Below, one piece after another: positions 4,437 to 46,175 of a DNA stretch of 64,000 nt. The first letter of the stretch is position 1; every line of letters starts with the position of its first letter. This stretch comes from Macrostomum hystrix (Eukaryota > Animalia > Platyhelminthes). The notes beneath the pieces were generated by a model, which saw nothing but the letters and a program-made list of their open reading frames with translations, did no database searches and had not been told where the DNA came from. The stretch lies in assembly GCA_950097015.1 (NCBI GenBank), contig CATNEN010000034.1, positions 6,262,001 through 6,326,000 on the forward strand, in the 5' to 3' direction. A program made the position numbers and the translations under genes.

Positions 4437-5547
4437 TGTTGTGAGCGAGTTTTACTACTATTAACTGTAATACTGGTGTATTTGTACAAACTCTCTTGTT
4501 ATGTTTCAACTTCAGGTGTAACTACTAATTAAAAGTAGTTTTAACTTCTAATACGAAAGTTTGTCTTCTGTTCGGTTAATCTATTTACTAATCGAAGTGT
4601 AATAGCTTGCACATGCCCTGAGTTGGTGGCTACTTTTTCTAACTTTTGACAGCTAACAAATTTATGACATTAGTGGTGCGAGATAATATCCAGATGTGGT
4701 CCTAAAAACTCCTCAATCCGCTCCCTTGCCCTTTTAACACGCTCTCTCCCGTGTCTTATCTCTTCGCCATAAATCCATTTGACTCAACCTATTATCTACG
4801 TAACGTACGTAACCTACGTAAGCTGAGCGTTATAAAACATTAGCTTAGTACTGCTATGTATTCTAAGCACTCGTATTTAAAAAGATTTTCTATCGATATC
4901 GCATTCATCATGTGCCTATATGTCGTACTTATTCTGTCCTATATGGGTATTTCGCGTGTGCTGTATAAATCAGTAATAGCATTTTTTCCTCAGCGCATTA
5001 GTCCGCGCTTGAGGATAGCGTGTGTGCTTCTATAAGTTACAAATTAGCTTCTCAATTTTAACCGGATAGCAGTTTCAGCAAAGTTAGCATTATCAGACAA
5101 ATATACATTTAAAGATAGATCTACATTGTTAATCTCAATTATTGTAAGCATGGAGTTCTGCTCTGTTGAACTATGTTTCAATTTTGTCAAAAGAAATAGC
5201 GGATTAACTTAATCGAAACGTTAATTGTAACTTATTTAATAAAATTTGCGCAACGCAAAACCATTTTCCTGTGAGCTTCTTCTGCATACGCTAATCAAAG
5301 TTATGCACAATTTAAATTATGCCAAAAAGCTAATAAAAACTACACATTTGTTTTCATTTTTTGCTACAAAATCTTTTATACTGCGAATCTGGCTTGACCT
5401 GCCCAATGCTGCTGCTACCGCTGTCACTGTTTATTTTCAACATCATTACCCCTATTAATAAGTAAATCGATTGCACAGGTCAGCTCGATTTTGGCTCGTG
5501 TTGTGGCGGCAAGGCAAGCTAGAAAAGGATGAATAAAACTGAAAAAA

Positions 5548-6600
5548 ATGTCTTCAAGTAGATAGCTTGAAGTTTTGTTTGTACTGCCTTCCATTGTATT
5601 TTTTATTGGACAATCTTTTTGTTATTTTACATAATATTTATTTAGCATATGTTTTACTGTCAAAGTTGTAAACTTTCCTAGAAAGCAAGGAGACAACCGT
5701 GATCCCTAGAATCTCTAGAAGAGCAGAGATCCAACAAGAGTCCCTTAGAAACAGAGCAGAGATCCCAGAAGAGTCCCTTAGAAACAGAGAAGATATCCCA
5801 GAAGAGTCCCTTAGTAACAGAGCAGAGATCCCAGAAGAGTCCTTTAGTAACAGAGCAGAGATCCCAGAAGAGTCCCATAGGAACAGAGCAGAGATCCCAC
5901 AAGAGCTCCTTAGAAACAGAGCAGAGATCCCACAAGAGCTCCTTAGAAATAGAGCAGAGATCCGACAAGAGCACCTTAAAAACAGAAGAGTCCCATAGGA
6001 ACGGAGAATGAGCCCTTTAGCAAAGTCATCCTTTTCTTTCGTTGCTTTCAGGCATCAGAAAAGTGTGAAAGCAGCCAGCCGGGCAAAGCAGGCGCCAATA
6101 GTCGCCTAATCGGGCCATTGAATCTGGTGCTAACTGTGTCTCTCAATTTTCTAGTGTTTCGCTTTCTACCACCAATCACTGCGCCATGGCTACTGCCACC
6201 CAATATTGCTACTAATAGTAGTAGTCTCAGTAGCATCGATCGAAAAACTAGTCTCAGTGTTGCTGCTAGTTGGCTAGCACCTTTGGCACTCACTGCAGCC
6301 ATCATACCTACGGCTTGTCGTCGTCTGCCAGCCCTTGGCGAAGGCTTCGCCACCGAGTCTCTTGTGCACTGCCTGCTGGCTCTGGTCAACTTGCTTAGCG
6401 GCGCCCTGGCCTCTCCTAACATGCTGCTGCCTCTGCTGCCGCTGTTCTCCATCTATTACTGCCTGTGCCGGCTTCTGTGCCTGCTAATTGGCTGGCTGGC
6501 GCCTGACAAACTGCCATTGGTCCAGTTTGCTAGGCTGTTTGTGCCCAACATACTACTGCTGGGTTTTAACTGCTATAGTGCACTACAGCTTGCTAAGTAG
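5548..6600 (+). CDS. Tentative ~288-aa protein with N-terminal 11-aa repeats and a multi-pass hydrophobic C-terminus; exons 5548-5557, 5682-5989, 6052-6600
   Basis: Strong acceptor TTGCTTTCAG at 6051 opens a stop-free frame to 6600 with several hydrophobic segments. Acceptor TTTCCTAG (5681) and donors at 5558 (phase 1) and 5990 (phase 0, weak GTCCCA) give one continuous frame MSSKSKETTV-(AEIPEESLRNR)n-ASEK. No family recognised. Confidence 0.4.
5712..5998. repeat. 33-bp minisatellite (AGAAACAGAGCAGAGATCCCAGAAGAGTCCCTT)n
   Basis: About 9 degenerate copies, open in one frame on each strand. Confidence 0.9.
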
Positions 6601-6705
6601 CTTACTGTGATGATCTGAAAGATTTAGCATTCAGTGAAGACGCGACTGGATTGGAATTAGTTTAAAGCATTCTTTGGGAATACTGCCTGTATTATCTGAA
6701 AAGTA

Positions 6706-7276
6706 ACATGGGATTATCTGAATACCATGGGATTATCTGAATGCCATGGGATTATCTGAAAAATACCATGGGATTATCTGAATGCCATGGGATTATCTGA
6801 ATAGCATGGGATTATCTGAATAGTACCATGGGATTATCTGAATAGTACCATGGGATTATCTGAATAGAATTGGATATGAATGCCATGGGATCATCTGAAT
6901 ACCATGGGATTATCTGAATACCATGGGATTATCTGAATGCCATGGGATTATCTGAATAGCATTGGATCTGAATGCCATGGGATCATCTGAATACCATGGG
7001 ATTATCTGAATACCATGGGATTATCTGAATAGTACCATGGGATTATCTGAATAGAATTGGATATGAATGCCATGGGATCATCTGAATACCATGGGATTAT
7101 CTGAATACCATGGGATTATCTGAATGCCATGGGATTATCTGAATAGCATTGGATCTGAATGCCATGGGATTATCTAAATACCATGGGATTATCTGAATGC
7201 CATGGGATTATCTGAAAAATACCATGGAATTATCTGAATAGCATTGGATTATCTGAATGCCATGGGATTATCTGAA
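6706..7276. repeat. ~19-bp minisatellite (GGGATTATCTGAATACCAT)n
   Basis: Direct periodicity with indel variants. Confidence 0.93.
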
Positions 7277-7759
7277 GACTGAAGGACGAAGTGCCATCTG
7301 TCATTTAGATGGGGTGTCATGTGAAGATCATTTGTCAAGCAAGGATACCAGCCATATTATCTGCAGTAGCCGCGCGCAGCGAGATCATATTAAGGTTAGC
7401 TTTGCTGCTATTATTGTTAAGTAGCCATTTCTAGTTTTTTTTAATAAATCGACAAGGAGGAACAAATTTATCGAGCTTTTGATTATTTTAATGATTTTAT
7501 TGCTTTGTTCGATTATTTTATTCCTTAATATTGCGTGAAGCCATCCAGTTGGTTTTCGTTTTGGAAATCTTGTTTGTCTCTTCGTCCACGCCTAATCCAT
7601 TGCGATAAAATATGTACCCTCGTACAAGCGTATGCTTTTTACATAATTCACTTTGCAATCTAAATTTGTATTGTGTGATTGATAATATACTATTTTACAA
7701 AGATTTGATCAGACTTGAAACATCTATTGTGCTTCCTTCTCTTACTGTGAGGACTGATT

Positions 7760-8660
7760 AAGTAGGCAGATTGGGAAGTGGCTAGAAAGATTTAGGGAGT
7801 GAGTAGACAGATTTAGGGAGTGGGTAGACAAATTGAGGGAGTGGGTAGACAAATTGAGGGAGTGGGTAGACAGATTAAGGGAGTGGGTAGACAGATTGAG
7901 GGAGTGGGTAGACAAATTAAGGGAGTGGGTAGACAGATTAAGGGAGTGGGTAGACAGATTGAGGGAGTGGGTAGACAAATTGAGGGAGTGGGTAGACAAA
8001 TTGAGGGTGTGGGTAGACAAATTGAGGGTGTGGGTAGACATGTTGAGGGAGTGGGTAGACAAATTGAGGGAGTGGGTAGACAGATTAAGGGAGTGGGTAG
8101 ACAGATTGAGGGAGTGGGTAGACAAATTGAGGGTGTGGGTAGACAAATTGAGGGTGTGGGTAGACATGTTGAGGGAGTGGGTAGACAAATTGAGGGAGTG
8201 GGTAGACAGATTAAGGGAGTGGGTAGACAGATTGAGGGAGTGGGTAGACAAATTGAGGGTGTGGGTAGACAGATTAAGGGAGTGGTTAGACAGAATAAGG
8301 GAGTGGCTGGATAGATTGAGGCAGTGGCTAGACAGATTGATGGAGTGGATAAACTGATTTAGGGAGTGGCTAGACAGATTAAGGGAGTGGGTAGACAGAT
8401 TGAGGGAGTGGGTAGACAAATTGAGGGAGTGGGTAGACAAATTGAGGGAGTGGGTAGACAAATTGAGGGTGTGGGTAGACAGATTAAGGGAGTGGTTAGA
8501 CAGAATAAGGGAGTGGCTGGATAGATTGAGGCAGTGGCTAGACAGATTGATGGAGTGGATAAACTGATTTAGGGAGTGGCTAGACAGATTAAGGGAGTGG
8601 CTAGACAGATTAAGGGAGTGGCTAGACAGATTAAGGGAGTGGCTAGACAGATTGAGGGAT
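7760..8660. repeat. 21-bp G-rich minisatellite (GAGGGAGTGGGTAGACAAATT)n upstream of DHX9
   Basis: Direct periodicity; explains ORFs 7742-8461, 7820-8314 and 7833-8357. Confidence 0.95.
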
Positions 8661-8810
8661 TAGCAGACTGAAAATCAAAATGAAGCGAGTTTCATCTAAG
8701 TATTTATGTGTTTCCCGTTAAACAGTCACTAATAAGTACCGTGTAATCTTTGCAGCCACTCAACTGTCAAATTGTTGCCCATAACTCCTTAGCAACAAGC
8801 GCTGTGCACA

Positions 8811-11800
8811 ATGTCGGACATGAAATCGTTTCTCTATGGCTGGCTTGGCACTAGAAAGCACCAACCGCCTGTCTACACTGTGAAATCAGAGACTGGGCGC
8901 GGCAGGAGCAGATTTGTTTGCGATGTGAGTAAGGATAGATGGGCTGAGCAGTGATGGGAGATGGGCTGAGCAGTGAAGGGAGATGGGCTGAGCAGTGAAG
9001 GGAGACGGGCTAAACAGTGAAGGGAGACGGGCTGAGCAGTGAAGGGAGACGGGCTGAGCAGTGAAGGGAGATGGGCTGAGCAGTGAAGGGAGATGGGCTG
9101 AGCAGTGAAGGGAGATGGGCTGAGCAGTGAAGGGAGATGGGCTGAGCAGTGAAGGGAGATGGGCTGAGCAGTGAAGGGAGATGGGCTGAGCAGTGAAGGG
9201 AGATGGGCTGAGGAGTGAAGGGAGATGGGCTGAGCAGTGAAGGGAGATGGGCTGAGCAGTGAAGGGAGATGGGCTGAGCAGTGAATATGTATGCTGAATA
9301 TATCTAATATTGAATGCTGAAGTCATCAATGCCTGCAGTTACGAGTGGACGGTTTCAACTATGTGGCCCGCGGCTCCTCAACTAGCAAGAAGGACGCCCA
9401 GACGAATGCGGCTCGCGACTTCGTGTCCTACCTGGTGCGCCAGGGCCAGATGTCAGCGGCTGAAGTCCCCCAGTTCACCCAGGACTCGCTGGAGGGATCT
9501 GGACCGCTTGGTCCCTATCAGCAGCCGTTTGCTGGCTTCGGCGGCGCTGGCGGTTGGCGGTCGGGAGTTCAGCCCGGTAGCTGCTGCTGCTGCTGCTGCT
9601 GCTGCTTCTGCTGCGTCTCAAGAACAGTTGGGAGTCGCAGCCACGGAGCCTAGGCACGGCTACATTGATCGAATTGCGGATCAGAAACGACTAGAAGAGG
9701 TTATTTATCGCTAGTAGAGACTTAATTACATCTGTCCATCAATCCGTCTATCCCACACGATTATTCCATGTGCCTCACCCAATCCTTACACAGGCCGAAG
9801 AAGTGGACTTCACAGCAGATATCCACGGCGGCTGGACAATAGACAATGCCAAGAGCAGGCTGCACCAGTACCTGCAGATGACAAAGCAGCCAAAGGTTGA
9901 TTATCATTATACCGTCATTGGGCCGGACCATAAAAGGTATTTGGGGATCACCAAATATAGAAAGATCCCAGTTCGTGACTGGGTGGTCACAGAATCTCCA
10001 AAATCTTAATGTCAGGTCACCAACCCTCCCAGATCCTCATGTTGATTCACCAAACCTCCCAGATCCCCAGGTTGGGTCACTAAACCTCCCAGATCCTCAG
10101 GTTGATTCACCAAATCTCCCAGATCCCCAGGTTGGGTCACCAAACTTCCCAGATCCTCAGGTTGATTCACCAAACCTCCCAGATCCTCAGGTTGATTCAC
10201 CAAACCTCCCAGATCCCCAGGTTGGGTCACTAAACCTCCCAGATCCTCAGGTTGGGTCACTAAACCTCCCAGATCCTCAGGTTGGGTCACTAAACCTCCC
10301 AGATCCTCAGGTTGATTCACCAAACCTCCCAGATCCTCAGGTTGATTCACCAAACCTCCCAGATCCTCAGGTTGATTCACCAAACCTCCCAGATCCTCAG
10401 GTTGATTCACCAAACCTCCCAGATCCCCAGGTTGGGTCACTAAACCTCCCAGATCCTCAGGTTGGGTCACTAAACCTCCCAGATCCTCAGGTTGATTCAC
10501 CAAACCTCCCAGATCCTCAGGTTGATTCACCAAACCTCCCAGATCCTCAGGTTGGGTCACCAAACTTCCCAGATCCTCAGGTTGATTCACCAAACCTCCC
10601 AGATCCTCAGGTTGGGTCACCAAACTTCCCAAGAACTTGTGATTTTGTCATTGAATCATACGTAGTTCATCGTTCACAGTTCGTTTAGTTCATTGATTCC
10701 AACGTAGATTTGAATAAACGCGTTGCCGCTCGTTAGTGCATCAGACTCACTTGTTGTGCGTAATAAATGACAATATTCATTAAAGCCACACTCTTGGCAT
10801 CAATTTCACCATCTTTAGAACTTGATTTGCCAAGTCTGTGCGCCTTGAAATTTTAATAAACCAATCGGTATTTCTCCGGTAGTCTAATTTTTGAGAATAC
10901 TTATTCTCATGTTTTAGGCTTTCTATCCTGTCAGTAAATCTGATTCAGTCAGTCAGTCCACAGTCGTACTCGATTAACTAGCGCAATTGGTGAGTCTGAT
11001 GCACATACTGGCAACTATATTGCTTACTTAGGTGCTGTCAATGCTTCTTCAGTTGAATGGCCGCTACCCTCCCCGAATCCTTGAGTGTTTTATGGCCCCT
11101 ACCCTCCTCCAATCCTTGAGTGTTTTATGCCCGCTACCCTCCTCCAATCCTTTAGTGTTTTATGGCCGCTACCCTCCTCCAATCCTTGAGTGTTTTATGG
11201 CCGCTACCCTCCTCCAATCCTTGAGTGTTTTATGGCCGCTACCCTCCTCCAATCCTTGAGTGTTTTATGGCCGCTACCCTCCTCCAATCCTTGAGTGTTT
11301 TATGGCCGCTACCCTCCTCCAATCCTTGAGTGTTTTATGGCCGCTACCTTCCCTCAATCCTTGAGTGTTTTATGGCTGCTACCTTCCTCCAATCCGTGAG
11401 TGTTTTATGGCCGCTACCTTCCCCCAATCCTTGAGTGTTTTATGGCCGCTACCCTTCTCCAATCCTTGAGTGTTTTATGCCCGCTACCCTTCTCCAATCC
11501 GTGAGTGTTTTATGCCCGCTACCCTTCTCCAATCCGTGAGTGTTTTATGGCCGCTACCTTCCCCTAATACTTTAGTGTTTTATGGCCGCTACCTCCCCCA
11601 ATCCTTATGACCGCTACCCTATCCCAAAATTAAGAGGCCGCCACCCGCCGTCAATGTGATTCGTGTCCCGTCCCGCATTGCAGAAGCTTCTCAGCTAAGT
11701 TGAGCATCATTAGTCGCAAAAGCAATCGCAGCATTACGGCCGTTGAGCACGGCTCTAATAAGCAGACCGCTAGCAAAGCCTGCGCTCTGTCTCTGGTTCG

Positions 11801-27600: not shown

Positions 27601-29275
27601 CTGATGCTTATCTAATAGCCCCACTGGCCATTTTACTCAGCCAGACGTCTCGCTTCCCAAATCATAATTATTAAAGCGGCAGCATCTTCTTCCTCACTCG
27701 AATTCTCTTCTCGGGGAACTAATTTAGCTAAAAACACTGGGCGCCTATTATTTTATAATGCAATGTCCAGAAGTAAAGGTTTAATTAATAATTCAGGCTA
27801 GTTCACAATCTATGCTCCCAATCCTCTCGCGTGGCGTTATATTTAATTTGACTCGAAAGGCACGAGGCGGCGGTAGAGGAGGAGAGTACTAGTGTGTTTG
27901 CAGGAAGGATAGGACGCGGCTTTCAGGCTCCAGCCAGACTAACCCGACTCTGATTAATAGCGCAGTCAAGTTGGCGATAGGGAGAACTGTTTTGACAGTG
28001 CGCCGTATAACTCCTTATCTACCAATCTCTTCCCATTTCCCCGTCAGTGCAAGCTAGCCTGCCCTAGGATCCTTTCGATATTCCGAACCCGACCGAACAA
28101 AAATTATACTTGCACTTTTCTCGCCTGGGACGGACTCTGCCTCTTCCCCGCCATCCTGCATCTTCTCCCAGATCTGCTGTCAACTCAATCCCTACTCCAT
28201 TCTCTCTTCTCCGTGAGTGTCGTCATAGCATAGGCGTTGCTAAATATAGAACTTGGTCGAGCCGTACTTCAAACCCTACCCTTCCTACTCTTCTCTCCTA
28301 CTCCCGCGATACTCAATGCCGGCACACACTGAGTCGAGCTCATTTCCATGAATCCGAGAGCTCTCATTTGCCTAGGCCTACGGCTGGATAGTTTTTTATT
28401 TATTAAAGAAATTGTAAATACAAAAATTGGCAATGTACCCATATTTATTGTTAAAACAGGGCCTTTAATACTGCACTGCAATTTGTAGTGCCTCTGTTAA
28501 ATTAGCTAGGAATTGGCTCTTTGTAGGCGTGTATCAAGTTTAATACCTATAATATCAACCAACTAGTGAAGCGAATTTGCTGAATCCATGCTTGTGTCCC
28601 CGTGCACTTGGCCCACACCCTCCACCCAATGTACAAATGACCTCCCCCCGAACCGGCAGTGAGTTTGCTGAACCCAACGCCCTTCTCCCTCTGTCTGTCT
28701 GTTCCTCTTTCTCTCCCCATCCCTTCCCTGTCAATTCCAACCCTTACAGCGAACATTGCTCCCAAGTTTCTAGCTTATGGCTTATTGGAGACACGCGCCA
28801 GGATCAGGAATGATAGAGAGTGAACAGGGGCTGCCTTCTTTGTTCTCCGCTTCTCTCTCTCCGCCCTCCTCCTACCCCCTGCCGGTCACAGCAAATCCGC
28901 GGATCGCAGACCTATCTCCACCCCTGTTTTCCAAAACCCCAAACCACCTAGAAATCTCTTCTTTATAGAGACGATTTCTCAGCTTTGCCCTAGCTTCTGA
29001 CCCATAATCTTCACTTCTCTCTGTTTGAAATCTTCATTTATAGCCTCCCTCCAGGTTTGCTTTTATTCCTTGAAAGTGTTCCTCATTTTAGCTTTTAATT
29101 ACCAAGCGACGCCACTAACTGGTCATTATTGCCATTTTTTACAGACACCAAAGCAAGATAAATGCGACACTTTGCACACTGGCCTGCTTGCCTGGCCAAG
29201 ATGCCATTGCGCTAGCTAAACAAATCGATTTGCCTGACATTCTTTATCCTTCACAAATTGTTCTTAAACTCGACA

Positions 29276-32200
29276 ATGGGAAACATTGCGCTACGCCCAT
29301 TTAAAACTTTGCGCTCGTCGACTCGACATCGGACCTCGACGGCGGCAGCCACGGCGGCATCGGCGGCTGCGGCGGCAGCGGCTGCAGCTGCGGCAGCTGC
29401 AACAGCATCGTCCACAATGCCTGCCACCGGATCGCCGGATCGAGTCGCCGGATCGACTGCAGCCTCCAGCAACTCCGCCGCCGCGGCAGCTAGCGCCGTC
29501 GCCTCGTCGGACATTCCAACCGCAGCGATGACGCCGTCTCCGTCGATGACAGCTGCCAACGCGGCTGCGGCTTCTTCGGCTGGCGGCAACTCCGAAGCAA
29601 TCCTGGGCCCCTATCAGGCCTCACAATCACTGCTAGGTAGCGCGGAGGAGCGCATGATTGTTGCTGCCCAGAACAGCAGCACTGTCGCATCCGCCGTTAT
29701 CGCCGTACCGGCCGCCTCCGCTTCCGCTATTGTTGTCGTAGGCGACGACAGCCCCCGCCAGCGTTCGTCAGCCGCCGCATCCACCTCCGCCGGCGCCGCC
29801 TCCACCAATCTATTCGTTGCCATGTACAATTATCAGGCTCGCACCGAGGAAGACTTGTCATTTAACAAAGACGAAGTGCTGGAAGTGGTTGACAACAGCC
29901 AGGGCACCTGGTGGATGGCCCGCGGCCTGAAGACCGGTCGTCAGGGCTATGTGCCGTCCAACTTTCTAGCCCAAGCTGAGACCATCGAGTCCGAGCCGTG
30001 GTTCTTCGGCCAGATCAGCCGCATGGACGCGCAGATACTGCTGCTGCGCACAGAGAATCGAGTCGGCTCATTCCTAGTGCGCAACTGCGAGAATCGATCC
30101 ACCCGGCGGCATCACGCCTATTCGCTGTCGGTTCGCGACCATTCGGTAGTTAAGCACTATCGCATCCGGCGGCACGAGAGCGGCCAGCTCTACATTAGTA
30201 GGCACGTGAAATTTCGCTGCGTTGCAGATTTGATTAGGCACTACAGCGCCGAGTCCAATGGTCTGTGTACTCGCCTGGTGGCACCCTGCGTCAGATCCAA
30301 TGTCCCGGAACCAATCGGCCTGTCCTATGACACCGTGGACATGTGGGAGATTCCCAAAGCCTCTTTACATCTGCGCAGCCTAGTTGGCCAGGGCCAATTC
30401 GGCGAAGTGTGGGAAGGCGTCTGGAATAGCACCACCCGGGTGGCCGTTAAAACATTGAAGCCTGGCACAATGGACGCCAAGGATTTCCTGCGCGAAGCTC
30501 AGACTATGAAACGATTGCGTCATCCGAACCTCATCCAACTGTACGCCGTGTGCACCCAAGACGAGCCAATCTATATTGTGACAGAGCTGATGAAACACGG
30601 CAGCCTGTTAGACTATCTGCAGTGCCCGGCTGGTCGGGCATTGTCAATCAAGGATCTGCTGTTCATGGGCTCCCAGGTAGCCGCCGGCATGGCCTACCTG
30701 GAGGGTCGCAATTATATTCACAGGTGAGAAATACGCCGCTTTTATTGCTGCTTTAGGAGCCGATTATCAATTCCTTATCGTAGTTAAAAGTTATAATTCC
30801 GAATTATTGGTAGTCCGTGCAAATTGCTTTAATATATAAAATATATTTGGTTTCAATTTTATCCCTCAGTTGTTACTTAGTTTAGCTTAAATCTCCATTT
30901 TGATCCCCCGCTTTTCTCCGTGTGTGTTTTCGTCGGGTTAATGTTAAATCTTTAGTTTAAAAGTTATTCCCTTATTTTCAACGTTATCATCTAAATTTCA
31001 ACTTAATCCCATAATTTCAACACTATCCACATAGTTTTTACGTTATCCCCATAGTTTTAACACTTATCCCCGTAATTTCAACATTATTTTCATAATTTTA
31101 ACGCTATCCCAATAGTTTCAACGTTATCTCCATAATTTTAACGCTATCCCAATAGTTTCAACGTTATCTCCATAAGTTTAACGCTATCCCAATAAGTTTC
31201 AACGTTATCTCCATAAGTTTAACGCTATCCCAATAGTTTCAACGTTATCTCCATAATTTTAACGCTATCCCAATAGTTTCAACGTTATCTCCATAATTTT
31301 AACGCTATCCCAATAGTTTCAACGTTATCTCCATAAGTTTAACGCTATCCCAATAGTTTCAACGTTATCTCCATAAGTTTAACGCTATCCCAATAGTTTC
31401 AACGTTATCTCCATAAGTTTAACGCTATCCCAATAGTTTCAACGTTATCTCCATAAGTTTAACGCTATCCCAATAGTTTCAACGTTATCTCCATAAGTTT
31501 AACGCTATCCCAATAGTTTCAACGTTATCTCCATAAGTTTAACGCTATCCCAATAGTTTCAACGTTATCTCCATAAGTTTAACGCTATCCCAATAGTTTC
31601 AACGTTATCTCCATAAGTTTAACGCTATCCCAATAGTTTCAACGTTATCTCCATAAGTTTAACGCTATCCCAATAGTTTCAACGTTATCTCCATAAGTTT
31701 AACGCTATCCCAATAGTTTCAACGTTATCCCCTTCAAGTTTTAGCGTTCTCCTTATGAAAGTACATTTTGTAAAAGTACAAATTGCACCCAGATTTGCCA
31801 TGATTTCCTTGACAACCCGCAGGGATCTGGCTGCTCGCAACATCCTAGTCGGCGACAACCGCGTAGCCAAGATCTGCGACTTCGGCCTCGCCCGCCTATT
31901 GAAAGTCGGCCAAGAGTACGAGGCCCGCCACGGCTCCAGATTTCCAATCAAATGGACGGCGCCGGAGGCGGCCAACTTTAGTAGATTCTCAATCAAATCA
32001 GACGTCTGGTCCTACGGCATCCTGCTCATGGAGCTGCTCACCCATGGCCGGGTGCCCTACCCCGGTATGAGCAACATGGATGTGCTGCACCAGGTCGAGA
32101 ACGGCTACCGGATGCCGCGGCCCTCCGGCTGCCCTGAGCCCGTCTACCGCCTGATGCGCCAGTGCTGGGACTCGGACGAGAACAGGCGGCCAAGCTTTGA

Positions 32201-32345
32201 AGAGATTCACGCCCGCATTGAGGATATGCTCAACGCCGACGATGACGATGGGTGCGGCTTCGGCGGCGGCGGCGGAGGCGGTGGAGGAGGCGGCGGCGGC
32301 GGAGGCTTTTGCGGCGCCGGTAGCCGGCGGGGCCTATTCAAGTAG
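29276..32345 (+). CDS. Src42A: Src42A/FRK-type non-receptor tyrosine kinase (SH3-SH2-kinase); exons 29276-30723, 31823-32345
   Basis: MGN N-terminus, SH3 ([17 protein letters not shown]...GYVPSNF), SH2 (WFFGQISR...FLVRNCE), [18 protein letters not shown]|DLAARN (phase-2 intron 30724-31822), DFGLARL...EYEAR...[16 protein letters not shown] and EYEAR are Src42A/FRK-like rather than c-Src-like. Confidence 0.9.
30975..31732. repeat. 40-bp (dimeric 20+20) minisatellite (AACGTTATCTCCATAAGTTTAACGCTATCCCAATAGTTTC)n in kinase intron
   Basis: Homogeneous 3' part, degenerate 5' part. Confidence 0.95.
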
Positions 32346-33029: not shown

Positions 33030-34784
33030 CGAGGGGTGTTTCAAAAGTAACGAGAATTTAGTCATAACTTTTTAATGGATAAACTTTTTAACTTGAAATT
33101 TTTACCCTGTAATTTTGCAAATATGGACAGCACACAGCTTCAGTTGCAACTCTATCGCTCTACATGCACTAGTGAAATCTCACATTAAATTCCAGACCTC
33201 GAGATAAAAAATTACGATTTTTGTCTGTGGTCTATATACCTGAGAAATTGCTTAGAACTTGAAAACTGCTAATGATGCTGCTGATGCACTCAGCTGCTTC
33301 TGATACTGTCTCCGGTGTCTGCTGTTTATGGGCAAAGTTGCCTAGGAATTTTTGTTTTTTAAGCTGCATAGGGCTGCTCAAAATTGCAAATGCTTGACTG
33401 AGAGACTTGACTGAAAAGTGCTTTCAAGTGAGACTATGGAACGACCGAAAGATCATTCAGAAATTGGATCGAAGGAAGGACAACGGCATTTTATCGCTGG
33501 TCTGGTTCAACTTGGAAAGAAGCCATGCGATATCGCTCGGGACCTGAACCAGGCATTTGGAGATCAGGCACTATCGCAAGCGCGGGTTTATGCTCACTGC
33601 AAGGCGTTCCGCGAGGGTGCTACAGGATGTGGTGACGCGCCGAGGTCAGGTCGCCCCCGCACGTCAACGGATGACAACAGCAAACAGATTGTCCGTGATT
33701 ACCTCTGCGCCAATCCTTCTGCCACATCGCGTGAAGTTGAGGAGGTCTGTAGCATCTCCATTGCTTCTGTGAGCCGCATCCTCAAGGAAATAAACTGGTC
33801 GAGAGTCTGTGCCAAGTGGGTGCCGCGTGAGTTGACCCTGGACCACAAAAGAAAGCGAATTCACTGTGCAACGGAGAACTTGCAGTTGTGGCAGCAACTT
33901 GGTGATCAGGAGTTTAAACGACTTCTCATCAGTATGGATGAGACACCACTGCCAATGTTTAATCCACTGACTAAGCAGCAGTCCATGCAGTGGGGGCCCA
34001 GGGGCCGTCAGCCGCACACAAAGCCAATGAAGTCGGCATGGACACGCAACATCATGTGCACCGTGTGGTTTGACGCCTGTGGGGTTCTGATGGTCGACTA
34101 CCTGCCAGACAAGGCCACCATCAATGCTGCATACGTGCAAGATCAAGTTGCTCGTCTGCGTGAAGTCATCCTCCAGAAGCGACGCATCATGCGCGCCAGG
34201 CCCTTCATCTTGTGGGACAACGCTCGCCCTCACGTCGCCGCGGCCACCACAAGGAAAGTGGAAGAGCTCGGCTTTCGGCTGCTTAATCATCCACCTTATT
34301 CACCAGACCTCGCCATTGCTGACTTTCACTTGTTTGGAGTAATGAAGAAGCCCATGCGAGGTCGCGTCTTCACCAGTCGACAGGAAGTCATTGCGGCGGC
34401 CAACGAATCTCTCCATGCGCTGCCTGCGAGTTTTTGGGGGGAGGGAATCGACAAACTGCTGCATCGCTATGAGAAATGTATCCAGCTCGATGGCAGCTTT
34501 GTGGAGCGTGCTGAAATCGCTGAAGAAATGGACGAAGGCGCTGATTTTTGACACAACAAACATGTTCACCTGTTCACTCTTTTCCACTGACAAAAATCGT
34601 AATTTTTAATCTCGAGGTCTGGACTTCAATGTGCGATTTCACTGGTGCATGTAGACCGACAGGGTTGCAACTGAAGCTGTGTGCTGTCCATATTTGCAAA
34701 ATTATCGGGTAAAAATTTCAAGTTAAAAAGTTTATCCATTAAAAAGTTATGACTAAATTCTCGTTACTTTTGAAACACCCCTCG
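33030..34784 (+). mobile_element. Full-length mariner (Tc1/mariner, DD34D) transposon, 1755 bp, TA target duplication, ~200-bp imperfect TIRs
   Basis: TA at 33028-33029 and 34785-34786. Ends read CGAGGGGTGTTTCAAAAGTAACGAGAATTT and its exact reverse complement. TIR similarity extends over 33030-33230 / 34584-34784. Confidence 0.97.
33436..34551 (+). CDS. Mariner transposase, intact, 371 aa from first ATG
   Basis: WVPREL linker, MDET (D1), WDNARPH (D2), HPPYSPDLAIAD (D3), with 34 residues between D2 and D3. No stops or frameshifts. Confidence 0.96.
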   Translation: MERPKDHSEIGSKEGQRHFIAGLVQLGKKPCDIARDLNQAFGDQALSQARVYAHCKAFREGATGCGDAPRSGRPRTSTDDNSKQIVRDYLCANPSATSREVEEVCSISIASVSRILKEINWSRVCAKWVPRELTLDHKRKRIHCATENLQLWQQLGDQEFKRLLISMDETPLPMFNPLTKQQSMQWGPRGRQPHTKPMKSAWTRNIMCTVWFDACGVLMVDYLPDKATINAAYVQDQVARLREVILQKRRIMRARPFILWDNARPHVAAATTRKVEELGFRLLNHPPYSPDLAIADFHLFGVMKKPMRGRVFTSRQEVIAAANESLHALPASFWGEGIDKLLHRYEKCIQLDGSFVERAEIAEEMDEGADF

Positions 34785-40880: not shown

Positions 40881-41681
40881 TCTTCTTATTTTATTTGTTT
40901 TTACTGATTATCATTTCGTCCGCATTTGTTCTGAACAAATTCAAGGTTCAGAAGGTGCTTCGTACTAATCAATCCTCTGAGGCCTTGTCCTCATCACAAC
41001 CTCTTAGTTGGTGATTAATTCGTCCATTAAAGGTGACAACCGCGACGGATGACGAGGCGTGGTTTCGTATTTCATTCAGCTTTTATTGGAGATACCTGTG
41101 TGCCAAAATTGATCTCATGTATGTGATTCATCATCTATAGGTGATATGAGTTGAGAAAAAAGTTAATATGTGAGAGTAATTCTCGAACTCCTAATAACAA
41201 ATTAAAGTCAATATTGGTAAGTTTATTTGCGTACATCATTGGAGTAAATGAAATGTGTAATTGAAAATTCGCAAATGGAAATACACGCTGGTATATATAC
41301 ATACCATTCGCTTATCAGCGAGCAAAATTCTTTTGAAATGTAAAAGCCCTGAGAGTAGGTAATAAGTAGTAACGTAAAACATTTAAAATAGTAGCGGAAA
41401 AAGTAAATATATAGCAATGCATGAAAAGGTATTTCTTAAGTTTCTTTTCCTAAAATACCCTAATCCAGCTTTATAAAAAAGTTCACTTGCTAGTCCGAAA
41501 TGCTTGTTTTAGTACACATTTCGACCTTGACCTTGAAGAATTCCAGCCAGCGATCACGCGTTGTACATGTGCGCTTCTGTTTTTTCAAATTTGACTTTGA
41601 ATTTGACCTCCAACCAGCGATCACGCAATGCATGCATGCGTCTCCATTTAGACTTTGACCTTGGAGAATTCCAATCAGTGA

Positions 41682-44378
41682 TCACGCAATGCTTGCGTAC
41701 GTCTCCATTTTGACTTTGACCTTGGAGAAGCCCAATCGGCGGGTCAGATCTTCGGCCCGCATCTGCGTGTAGGCGCGTCGGCTGGCGGCCAGGTGGCCGG
41801 ACTTCAAGTAGACGGAGGCGGCCGGCCCGGCTGTAGCCAGGAGCAGCCCGTGATGCCGCTGGTTGTTGAGACGGAGGAATCTGGTGGCCCAGGCGCGCAG
41901 GAGGACGGCCTCAATCAGCAGGCTCTGATTGGCCTCACAGAGTAGCGACATCAGGTGAAAGTCGGTAGTGAGGAAGCCGGGCAACAGGTGGAAGCTGACA
42001 TCTCGAACGCGATGCACCTGGAGTTGCGATTTTATTAAAATAATCGCGTCAGCTCATCATATAAAAAAATGAATGGAATTCAAAATGGGATCGATACACG
42101 TGAGTAGATTTCGGATCGGCATAGAATAGAAAAAAAATGAAGGTAGAAAGGCTCTAAAAATCTACGAATTTTCTGCCCCTCTATTTCTATTTCTATTTCA
42201 CCTCAAATATTACAATCGATCGCGTGCCGTGAAGCACATTTTTTGAGAGCGATTGCTCAGGCCAACTGCTCCGACATCAACAGCTTCCGGGTTGAGTCCC
42301 TGTACAATGCTCAAGGAGTCTGGGGGGATGTGGGAGAAGCTAAATGAGTCTGCTACAGTATCACACTTCTCCAGTGCAGAGGGCCTGAATGAGTCACAGA
42401 TTTCTGAGTCACGCAGGACAGACACTGCAGACATTACAGATACTACAGACATTACAGACACTGCAGACATTACAGATGCTACAGACATTGCACATACTAC
42501 AGACATTGCACATACTACAGACATTACACATACTACAGACATTACAGATACTACAGACATTACAGATGCTACAGATATTACAGATGCTACAGACATTGCA
42601 CATACTACAGACATTGCACATACTACAGACATTAAAGATACTGCAGACACTACAGACATTAAAGATACTGCAGACACTACAGACATAACATATACTACAG
42701 AAATGACAGGACCTCGTGTCTGTAGAAGCTAAGCGCTATCAGTTTGATGAAGCCGGCAAAGAAGCTGGCCTCCATGTAGGCGTCCTCCTTGAAGGCCAGT
42801 CGCGACTGAGCGAAACGCAGCCAGGTGAAGCCGGCCTGGCCCGTGGCTCCGACAGCTGAACCGGCAGCCAGGCCCAGCAGAGCCCAGTTGGACCAGGCGC
42901 TGAGCAGCTGAGGGCAGACAATCGATGGCAGTCCGCCAGTCTGATGGCAGACTCGTTCGGCGGGAAACGGCGCCGGCGAGACGGCGAGGCAGCAGACGAG
43001 AGCGCAGGCGGTTATCGCCAGGCACTGGCCAGCGAGACTCGCCGCCTGCTTAGCCGCCCAGGATCTGCAAAGCCGGCCGGAGTTCTGCCAGTCCGCCAGG
43101 CTGTGTCCGAGGCTCCAGTCGACTCGGCCGGCCTCCGAGCTGCAGAGTCGAGCGGCGCAGCCGGCTGAGAAGCCGCTGTCGGGCATCGCTGCGCAATTAC
43201 CGGGCTGCGAGTCGGCGATCTCGCTAACGTAGGGGCGTTGATAGGAGAGATTCTGTATGAGATTAGATGTTAATAGATGAGATTCTGTATGAGATTGGAT
43301 GTTAATAGGTGAGATTCAGTATGAGATTGGATGCCGAAAGTGAGATTCTGTATGAGATTGGATGCTTATAGGTGAGATTCTGTATGAGATTGGATGCTGA
43401 ATGTTGAGATTCTGTATGAGATTGGATGCTGAATGTTGAGATTCAGTATGAGATTGGATGCTGATAGGTGAAATTCTGTATGAGATTAGATGCAAAAGGT
43501 GAGAAACTGTATGAGATTGGATGTTGAAATTTGAGATTCTGTATGTGAAATATGTGAAATTTGAAATTTAAGATATCGCATTAGAAAAATATAGAATAAA
43601 AAAGGATTCCCAAATCAGTTGGGTCAGATGTGCAGCCAGTGACACAGCGCAGCTATTGCACAGTGGCTTCCAAAGGCTGTGTACAGCTTGTCCAGTCCGT
43701 GGACTGGGGGAGGTCGCCACACTTACCCGAACTCCTGCCCCAGCTAATGCTGGCACCAACTTTCAGCTTGGCAAACTTAACCCACTAGAGCATCAAGTGT
43801 CTTGCTGATGTGTACAAATAGCTAAATTTGGGTCGAGATTCGAACCCATGACCTCTCATATTCAGATGTCCAAAGCTCTGAGCACTGGGCTACTAATACT
43901 CTTATATAAGCCCTAATGAAATATATGATTAAATCAAGATTTTGCTTTGTAGAAAATATTAACAATTGAGATCTTCCATGAGATGTGATTGGACTGCTAA
44001 CCTCACAGCCAGCCGCACGAATTGCCTGATCTCGCTCTGGACCAACAGTAGATCCCGCCTGAGCTGCGGACCCGCCGTCAGCTGCCACCACAGCTGCGGC
44101 AGCCACATCAGGCCGGCGTAGGCAAGCAGCGCAGTCGCTAGGTCGCGAGTTCGTGTTCCCACCGGCTGCTGCAGGTGGCACATCTGGCTGACAAATAGGA
44201 CCTGGGCAGCGCTGGCATTGCGATGGAGTTGGCATGCTCCAGGTGCGGTCGCGAGTTCGAGTCCAAACAGACTAATCGATAGAGTGAGTGGCCAGAACAC
44301 TGAGAATAGTTTGGCCAGGTGGTCTGGCAACAGCTCAATGCGAAAATTTGAGTAGTCGTCCAGGTAACCGCATGACAT
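41682..44378 (-). CDS. Pannexin/innexin-family channel, 407 aa, pannexin-like; exons 44378-44002, 43223-42713, 42017-41682
   Basis: Splice phases 2 and 0 are compatible. Four hydrophobic segments, two Cys per extracellular loop (GAC-x17-C; RVC...IVC). Motifs FRIELLPDHL, LMWLPQLWWQLTAGPQLRRDLLLVQSE and TDFHLMSLLCEAN align by eye to PANX1 [37 protein letters not shown] and NDLSLYNLFLEEN. Confidence 0.8.
42415..42705. repeat. 18-bp minisatellite (ACAGACATTGCACATACT)n, pannexin-like intron 2
   Basis: Direct periodicity starting just inside the donor. Confidence 0.93.
43245..43550. repeat. Degenerate ~30-bp minisatellite (GAGATTCTGTATGAGATTGGATG...)n
   Basis: About 10 diverged copies next to the acceptor at 43224. 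Confidence 0.88.
43600..43894 (-). mobile_element. tRNA-derived SINE (family B) in pannexin-like intron 1
   Basis: Minus-strand head TAGCCCAGTG...GGGTTCGAATCTCGACCC (A/B boxes), then CAAGACACTT and the CCCAGTCCACGGACTG core shared with 407-422. Confidence 0.6.
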
Positions 44379-44604: not shown

Positions 44605-46175
44605 CCGATTATCCCACTGTGCTCAAGGTACGACTCAACCACCCCAATGTGCTCAAGCTACGAATCAAACATTCCACTTTGCTCAAGCTACGAATCAAAC
44701 ATTCCACTGTGCTCAAGCTACGAATCAAACATTCCACTGTGCTCAAGCTACGAATCAAACATTCCACTGTGCTCAAGCTACGACTCAACCACCCCACTGT
44801 GCTCAAGCTACGAATCAAACATTCCACTGTGCTCAAGCTACGAATCAAACATCACACTGTGCTCAAGCTACGAATCAAACATCACACTGTGCTCAAGCTA
44901 CGAATCAAACATTCCACTGTGCTCAAGCTACGACTCAACCACCCCACTGTGCTCAAGCTACGAATCAAACATCACACTGTGCTCAAGCTACGAATCAAAC
45001 ATCACACTGTGCTCAAGCTACGAATCAAACATCACACTGTGCTCAAGCTACGAATCAAACATTCCACTGTGCTCAAGCTACGACTCAACCACCCCACTGT
45101 GCTCAAGCTACGAATCAAACATCACACTGTGCTCAAGCTACGAATCAAACATCACACTGTGCTCAAGCTACGAATCAAACATTCCACTGTGCTCAAGCTA
45201 CGACTCAACCACCCCACTGTGCTCAAGCTACGAATCGAACATTCCACTGTGCTCAAGCTACGAATCAAACATCACACTGTGCTCAAGCTACGAATCAAAC
45301 ATCACACTGTGCTCAAGCTACGAATCAAACATCAAACTGTGCTCAAGCTACGACTCAACCACCCCACTGTGCTCAAGCTACGAATCGAACATCTCACTGT
45401 GCTCAAGCTACGAATCAAAAATCACACTGTGCTCAAGCTACGAATCAAACATTCCACTGTGCTCAAGCTACGACTCAACCACCCCACTGTGCTCAAGCTA
45501 CGAATTAAACATCACACTGTGATCAAGCTACGAATCAAACATCACACTGTGCTCAAGCTACGAATCGAACATCTCACTGTGCTCAAGCTACGAATCAAAC
45601 ATCTCACTGTGCTCAAGCTACGAATCAAACATCACACTGTGCTCAAGCTACGAATCGAACATCTCACTGTGCTCAAGCTACGAATCAACCACCCCACTGT
45701 GCTCAAGCTACGAATCGAACATCTCACTGTGCTCAAGCTACGAATCAAACATCTCACTGTGCTCAAGCTACGAATGAAACATCACACTGTGATCAAGCTA
45801 CGAATCAAACATCACACTGTGCTCAAGCTACGAATCAAACATCACACTGTGCTCAAGCTACGAATCAAACATCACACTGTGCTCAAGCTACGACTCAAAT
45901 ATCCCACTGTGCTCAAGCTACGGATCGAACATCACACTGTGCTCAAGCTACGAATCAAACATCACACTGTGCTCAAGCTACGAATCAAACATCACACTGT
46001 GATCAAGCTACGACTCAAATATCCCACTGTGCTCAAGCTACGGATCGAACATCACACTGTGATCAAGCTACGAATCAAACATCACACTGTGCTCAAGCTA
46101 CGAATCAAACATCACACTGTGATCAAGCTACGACTCAAATATCCCACTGTGCTCAAGCTACGGATCGAACATCCC
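44605..46175. repeat. 30-bp minisatellite (ACTGTGCTCAAGCTACGAATCAAACATCAC)n
   Basis: About 52 copies; explains ORFs 44575-45522 and 44619-46238. Confidence 0.96.

Follow-up and report, generated by a model that had tools for sequence, protein, structure and literature searches.

Does the genome of a flatworm encode a channel of the pannexin type? Textbooks, like recent surveys (PMC3928549 and the portion of PMC8769644 used here), describe pannexins as what is left of the innexin family in chordates, and a search of a literature library found no published description of a pannexin-type protein in a flatworm. The question is raised by a stretch of 64,000 nucleotides from Macrostomum hystrix (contig CATNEN010000034.1, positions 6,262,001 to 6,326,000; hereafter the window, in whose numbering all positions on this DNA are given). 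At 41682-44378 on the minus strand of the window lies a predicted gene in which three stop-free exons are joined via GT/AG sites to give 407 codons. An original prediction, made from the letters of the sequence, had taken the product for a channel closer to chordate pannexins than to innexins, and its host for an animal outside the chordates. The analysis reported here supports a qualified version of that view. The locus is probably a gene of the flatworm Macrostomum, intact and in three exons, that encodes a channel protein with four membrane passes, and on balance we favor the reading that it is a real gene whose product belongs to the innexin/pannexin superfamily of large-pore channels as a very divergent subunit of the pannexin type. 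Judged from sequence, the first transmembrane segment (TM1), the first outer loop, TM2 and the helix that follows it are homologous to the corresponding parts of PANX1-3. Orthology to chordate pannexins is unproven.

Similarity to pannexins

All sequence and profile searches were run exon by exon, or on sub-pieces of exons. When exon 1 was compared by phmmer to the Protein Data Bank (PDB), 31 distinct sequences were matched and all 31 are pannexins. The best E values were 8.8e-6 for PANX3, 7.9e-5 for frog PANX1, 2.7e-4 for human PANX1 and 4e-3 for PANX2; among all solved structures no innexin (INX-6 included), LRRC8, CALHM or connexin chain was found for exon 1 at E<=10. The alignment with PANX3 pairs residues 11-119 of the query with residues 27-149 of PANX3 and contains 41 identities over 109 query residues (~38%). 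It extends from an R-x-E-L motif ahead of TM1 to the helix after TM2, and pairs both loop-1 cysteines as well as the glycosylation sequon. Residues 76-125 alone (50 amino acids (aa), aligned over ~80-119) also matched 31 sequences, all pannexins, at E=1.8e-4: this piece accounts for 24.6 of the 29.4 bits obtained with exon 1. For exon 1 the ESM Atlas ranked first a cluster from Platyhelminthes named 'Innexin family protein' (0.95), with chordate Innexin/Pannexin_like clusters at 0.94 and 0.93. Neither Innexin (PF00876) nor Pannexin_like (PF12534) was found in Pfam searches of all exons and sub-pieces at E<=10. The preference for pannexins over innexins expressed in the original prediction therefore holds for the N-terminal third of the protein, where 31 of 31 matches are pannexins, a TA.P motif is present and the Pfam Innexin profile is not matched; for exons 2 and 3 there is no statistical match.

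The predicted protein has the four-pass topology of a pannexin. Hydropathy places hydrophobic segments at approximately residues 22-44, 80-100, 187-210 and 237-260, and each outer loop contains two cysteines, as is the case in proteins of the pannexin type: the three-exon open reading frame (ORF) of 407 aa, its four membrane passes and its paired cysteines are all as first described. TM1 (44247-44315; approximately residues 22-44) is aligned to TM1 of PANX3. In outer loop 1, C49 (44232-44234) pairs with C66 of PANX3, and C67 (44178-44180) – 18 residues past C49 – pairs with the second loop-1 cysteine of PANX3. Between the two cysteines, five residues past C49, stands the sequon N54-A55-S56 (44211-44219), a predicted glycosylation site aligned to N71-F-S of PANX3. 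Both the sequon and its PANX3-type position (Cys+5) had been anticipated, and N54 is indeed exactly aligned with N71. TM2 (residues 80-100) and the next helix (101-119), together at 44022-44141, include LPQLWWQLTAGPQLRRDL, which is the strongest pannexin-like stretch of the protein. P94 in TM2 is aligned with the TM2 proline of PANX3 and, together with the cysteine pairs and the four-pass topology, is a feature of the innexin/pannexin superfamily. TM3 (42971-43042; exon-2 residues 61-84) is the top hydrophobic peak (Kyte-Doolittle value 2.24), while TM4 (42821-42892; exon-2 residues 111-134) is Gly/Ala-rich and weakly hydrophobic. Outer loop 2 carries the motif CHQTGGLPSIVC (42914-42949), which runs from C218 to C229, and in the C-terminal part the motif LLPGFLTTDFHLMSLLCEANQS (41922-41987) fits the pattern LP.{0,1}F...D[ILF].L.{7}N.[ST].

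For comparison with published motifs we used the chordate pannexin and non-chordate innexin sequences in the supplement of PMC8769644, the portion used being one that excludes flatworm sequences. Within this portion the 52 occurrences of YYQW all fall in the non-chordate file, the chordate files having none. The reverse is true of RFTAAP (83-90 occurrences in the chordate files), TAAP (88-90) and TAVP (5-9), each of which occurs 0 times in the non-chordate file; exact TAGP occurs 0 times in either. No YYQW motif is present in the 407-aa translation, which bears out the earlier claim of its absence, and the TAGPQL..DL stretch of the query resembles the chordate TA[AV]P motif. After TM2 the query reads LMWLPQLWWQLTAGPQLRRDL, where sequences from the same portion read LMYVPTLFWRFTAAPQLYGDL (shark PANX1), IMYLPVVFWNVTAVPTLQAEM (lancelet) and FYVPRYFWKIWEGGKI (innexins). 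In loop 2, CHQTGGLPSIVC was compared by eye with CNIRTGILKNDTALPALIQC of amphibian PANX1 and CNIRSGELLVMKNIPEAVNC of a lancelet pannexin; in the C-terminal part LLPGF..TTDFHLMSLLCEANQS was compared, likewise by eye, with ILPTF...NDISLFLLFIEENIS and MLPF...SDINLLAVYLASNVT in PANX1 and lancelet. The post-TM2 TA.P pattern was matched by 0 of 200000 shuffled sequences. Patterns loose enough to admit both the query and the PANX1 and lancelet sequences were matched by 64 of 200000 shuffled exon-2 sequences (loop 2) and by none of 300000 shuffled exon-3 sequences (C-terminal part), but the patterns were written post hoc with the query known, so these figures overstate the case. The occurrence of the motifs in pannexin order argues, at the level of sequence, that all three exons encode parts of one pannexin-type protein.

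Gene model, coding signal and repeats

All parts of the gene lie on the minus strand (slashes in splice sites mark the boundary between exon and intron). Exon 1 (44002-44378) opens with an ATG at 44378, two codons downstream of an in-frame TGA, and supplies 125 codons + 2 nt, which encode a short N-terminus, TM1, outer loop 1, TM2 and the post-TM2 helix; it ends at 44002 with the donor GAG/GTTAGC. Intron 1 (43224-44001) is 778 nt long, has GT/AG ends and a G+C content of 0.40. Exon 2 (42713-43223; 1 nt + 170 codons) follows the acceptor GTTAG/C, encodes the inner loop, TM3, outer loop 2 and TM4, and closes with the donor GAG/GTCCTG. Intron 2 (42018-42712; 695 nt) is followed, at the acceptor TCCAG/G, by exon 3 (41682-42017), which comprises 111 codons for the cytoplasmic C-terminal part and the stop codon TGA at 41684-41682. 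The phases of the three exons are compatible and yield 407 aa. For intron 1 there is an alternative in-frame pair of sites, donor GCT/GTGAGG (exon end 44007) and acceptor GCGAG/ATC (exon start 43219): this donor is stronger than GTTAGC, and use of the pair would give a protein of 404 aa with three inner-loop residues fewer.

Coding signal was assessed with a codon-usage table derived from the Pfam-supported exons of the neighboring kinase and helicase genes. In every exon the frame of the model is the sole stop-free frame of the six, and also the sole frame with a positive codon score: the scores of exons 1, 2 and 3 are +0.08, +0.03 and +0.29 bits per codon, exon 3 being the best. The G+C content of the exons (0.59, 0.66 and 0.62, respectively) compares with ~0.40 in the surrounding DNA and introns, and G+C at third codon positions is 0.68-0.79. 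All three exons stay open in 1 of 20000 nucleotide shuffles.

The gene is set among repeats. Within intron 2 an 18-nt minisatellite (42418-42709) begins 3 nt past the exon-2 donor, and within intron 1 a 32-nt minisatellite (43237-43545) stops 11 nt short of the acceptor AG and 13 nt short of exon 2. Upstream, 52 copies of a 30-nt satellite (44611-46173) begin 233 nt from the ATG, which leaves very little room for a promoter. A further repeat in intron 1 (43622-43854) contains a tRNA-like box B (GGTTCGAATC) and is 70% identical by blastn to positions 962-1184 of M. lignano contig NIVC01001110.1; a short interspersed element (SINE) is its probable identity. ARAGORN found no tRNA at the locus, this repeat included.

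Counter-evidence, alternative explanations and host

In addition to the post hoc origin of the motif patterns, a number of results weigh against a working gene for a pannexin-type protein. The statistical signal is concentrated in ~40 residues, those of TM2 and the following helix. A piece comprising TM1 and loop 1 alone matched no pannexin in the PDB; the alignment of the loop-1 cysteines and sequon is thus consistent with the pannexin assignment but is not independent evidence for it. The sequon, moreover, had been put forward as a marker of pannexins, and in this role it adds little: it is a weak discriminator, since flatworm innexins often have a sequon in an outer loop, and loop-1 sequons are listed for many of them in the portion of PMC8769644 used here. 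The N-terminus is ~16 residues shorter than that of pannexins. Exons 2 and 3 and their sub-pieces gave no relevant match in the PDB, and exon 2 gave noise only (MurJ fragments) in the ESM Atlas. Exons 1 and 2 had no match in word searches, a method that is blind to ~407-aa proteins when queries are the size of an exon; a HMMER search of 1.84 billion representatives with exon 1 returned four matches, all of them tandem-repeat artefacts, at a threshold below which pannexins of ~29 bits would fall; and a metagenome scan with exon 1 gave no match. Structures predicted by AlphaFold2 without an alignment were too poor for fold comparison (pLDDT 47.8 for exon 1 and 43.7 for exon 3). As for the gene itself, both donors, GTTAGC and GTCCTG, are weaker than the CACAG/GTGAGA of the neighboring kinase gene, and a 61-nt tandem repeat (2.2 copies, 41609-41741) takes in the final ~19 codons together with the stop codon. 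The copy that follows downstream repeats the 17 C-terminal residues (76% alike), and with the stop inside a repeat the actual C-terminus could be different from the modelled one.

Could the protein be an innexin in disguise? According to this explanation it branched off within the flatworm's own innexin expansion, has evolved fast and has lost the hallmarks of innexins, its likeness to pannexins in TM2 reflects retained ancestral or convergent residues, and it has no special kinship with chordate pannexins. We regard this as possible but doubtful. In the Atlas, exon 1 falls nearest to an innexin cluster from Platyhelminthes (0.95), yet the Pfam Innexin profile matches none of the exons. The signal is confined mostly to 40 residues, and the remainder of the protein has drifted past detection, just as a long branch predicts; however, three pannexin paralogues were matched where INX-6 was not at E<=10, and the ~38% identity to PANX3 over 109 residues contrasts with the ~15% that is usual between pannexins and innexins (PMC7108861). 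That flatworm innexins commonly bear outer-loop sequons fits an innexin offshoot, whereas the agreement of the TA.P, LP.F and D..L..N.S motifs with pannexins, spread as it is over three exons, does not.

A second alternative is that the locus does not work: exon 1 would be the relic of a pannexin-like gene and exons 2 and 3 chance frames in G+C-rich DNA, or the pieces would have been misjoined. If so, then weak donors, minisatellites that abut both splice sites of exon 2 and a repeat over the stop would cause no surprise, but neither 407 stop-free codons, seen in 1 of 20000 shuffles, nor the fact that the frame of the model is the sole open and the best-scoring frame of each exon sits easily with chance, even though the codon scores of exon 1 (+0.08) and exon 2 (+0.03) are low. 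Exons 2 and 3 lack matches, yet they place the loop-2 cysteine pair, TM3 and TM4, and the C-terminal motif at the positions they occupy in pannexins. We consider a non-working locus improbable. Assignment to another four-pass large-pore family – a repeat-less LRRC8 channel domain, CALHM or a connexin-like protein – is highly improbable and was rejected for want of matches: the general topology with Cys-bearing outer loops is shared, and one Atlas cluster near exon 1 carries Pannexin_like (PF12534), but no LRRC8, CALHM or connexin chain was found at E<=10 for any exon, PF12534 itself was not matched and no leucine-rich-repeat exon lies downstream.

Chordate contamination or recent transfer was rejected in view of the host-type introns with their minisatellites, the flatworm neighbors and an identity of only ~38%. 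The host is non-chordate, as had been supposed, since the best match of the neighboring kinase is in Macrostomum lignano. This neighbor is a Src42A-like SH3-SH2-kinase gene on the plus strand (29258-32296), an exon of which finds its best database match in M. lignano BOX15_Mlig001734g1 at 72% identity (all others <=59%). At the DNA level, identity to the BOX15_Mlig001734g1 locus is 84-86% in two kinase exons, while flanks and introns do not align; the kinase junction CACAG/GTGAGA ... CCGCAG/GG joins HR to DLAARN. The protein collection lacks the kinase's own product too; that it contains none of the pannexin-like gene is therefore uninformative with respect to expression. A synteny walk from the M. 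lignano kinase reached the end of the contig 5 kb past the kinase, and the weak exon-2 match found there is noise. Just upstream of the kinase gene, M. lignano contig NIVC01001110.1 contains a 4-kb simple satellite (4921-9281), the minus strand of which reads as SIYL repeats. The window further contains a DEAH helicase at 12.6-23.8 kb and, on the plus strand at 33418-34551, an open mariner/Tc1-type transposase ORF of 377 aa with helix-turn-helix and DDE domains. No paralogue of the pannexin-like gene was found within the window by tblastn of its exons.

Significance and comparison with known channels

If the gene encodes a pannexin-type subunit, then such subunits would, by analogy, be expected to form a ring – of seven, if pannexin-like – around a wide pore in the plasma membrane that would pass ions and small metabolites, ATP among them. 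If N54 carries a glycan, the docking of two channels would be hindered, and the pore would then lead to the cell exterior instead of linking one cell to another.

The implications for the history of the superfamily are necessarily tentative. It is conceivable, though we would not call it likely, that the pannexin branch predates the chordates, that innexins and pannexins had separated by the time of the last common bilaterian ancestor, if not earlier, and that most protostomes have lost the pannexin side. Macrostomum lies outside the data of the 2022 survey, according to the portion of PMC8769644 used here, and a parallel case, that of connexins older than chordates, is the subject of a 2026 preprint (10.64898/2026.06.13.731801). 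A flatworm protein that matches PANX1-3 yet is missed by the innexin profile would make the age of the pannexin branch testable, and would bear on the proposal that a bottleneck left chordates with one glycosylated innexin; it would also place a pannexin-like channel in a model animal that regenerates and is amenable to transgenesis. Should it prove to be only a long-branch innexin, it would be a curiosity of a fast-evolving gene family.

From LRRC8 proteins the flatworm protein is set apart in that it has neither a PF12534 match nor a leucine-rich-repeat exon, and ends 111 residues past exon 2. With protostome innexins (PF00876; INX-6) it shares the superfamily, the topology, two cysteines in each outer loop and the TM2 proline, and with flatworm innexins in particular the frequent outer-loop sequon. 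It differs from innexins in that it lacks a PF00876 match, YYQW and the post-TM2 P...W..EGG, and in that INX-6 is unmatched at E<=10.

Lancelet pannexins (Ce_Bbe_01 and others in the portion of PMC8769644 used here) were compared by eye. They have LP..FW..TA.P.L after TM2, C...SG...IP...C in loop 2 and LPF...D.NL...N.T in the C-terminal part, all of which are like the flatworm protein; they differ in a duplicated loop-1 segment and in the position of the sequon, which is at N142/N146 and not at Cys+5. In file 8 of the same supplement, as far as the portion used extends, the tunicate-labelled rows Tu_Cin_01/02 and Tu_Cro_01/02 are identical or shortened copies of the lancelet rows above them, and the tunicate labels may have slipped.

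The closest known proteins are vertebrate PANX1-3, PANX3 being the closest (structures 8hwq and 7xl6), with which exon 1 is collinear over the 109 residues aligned. The likeness to PANX3 includes a loop-1 cysteine pair 18 residues apart and a sequon at the position of N71. Shared with PANX1-3 are the TM2 proline followed by W..TA.P.L..DL and, as read by eye and post hoc, the loop-2 cysteine pair with TG...LP and the C-terminal LP.F...D.xL...N.S, although exons 2 and 3 are below statistical detection. The glycosylated residues of the vertebrate proteins are N71 of Panx3, N86 of Panx2 and N254 of Panx1 (PMC3928549); loop 2 of the flatworm protein is shorter than in pannexins and has no sequon, and so none of the N254 type of PANX1. 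A final difference concerns the mouth of the pore. In PANX1, W74 and R75 are the outer constriction and selectivity pair, on which the preference for anions depends (PMC7108861), W74 being specific to PANX1; the flatworm protein does not have this pair, but has A57-A58 where PANX3 has I74-R75 and PANX1 has W74-R75. Since two alanines replace W74 and R75, gating and selectivity probably differ from those of PANX1.

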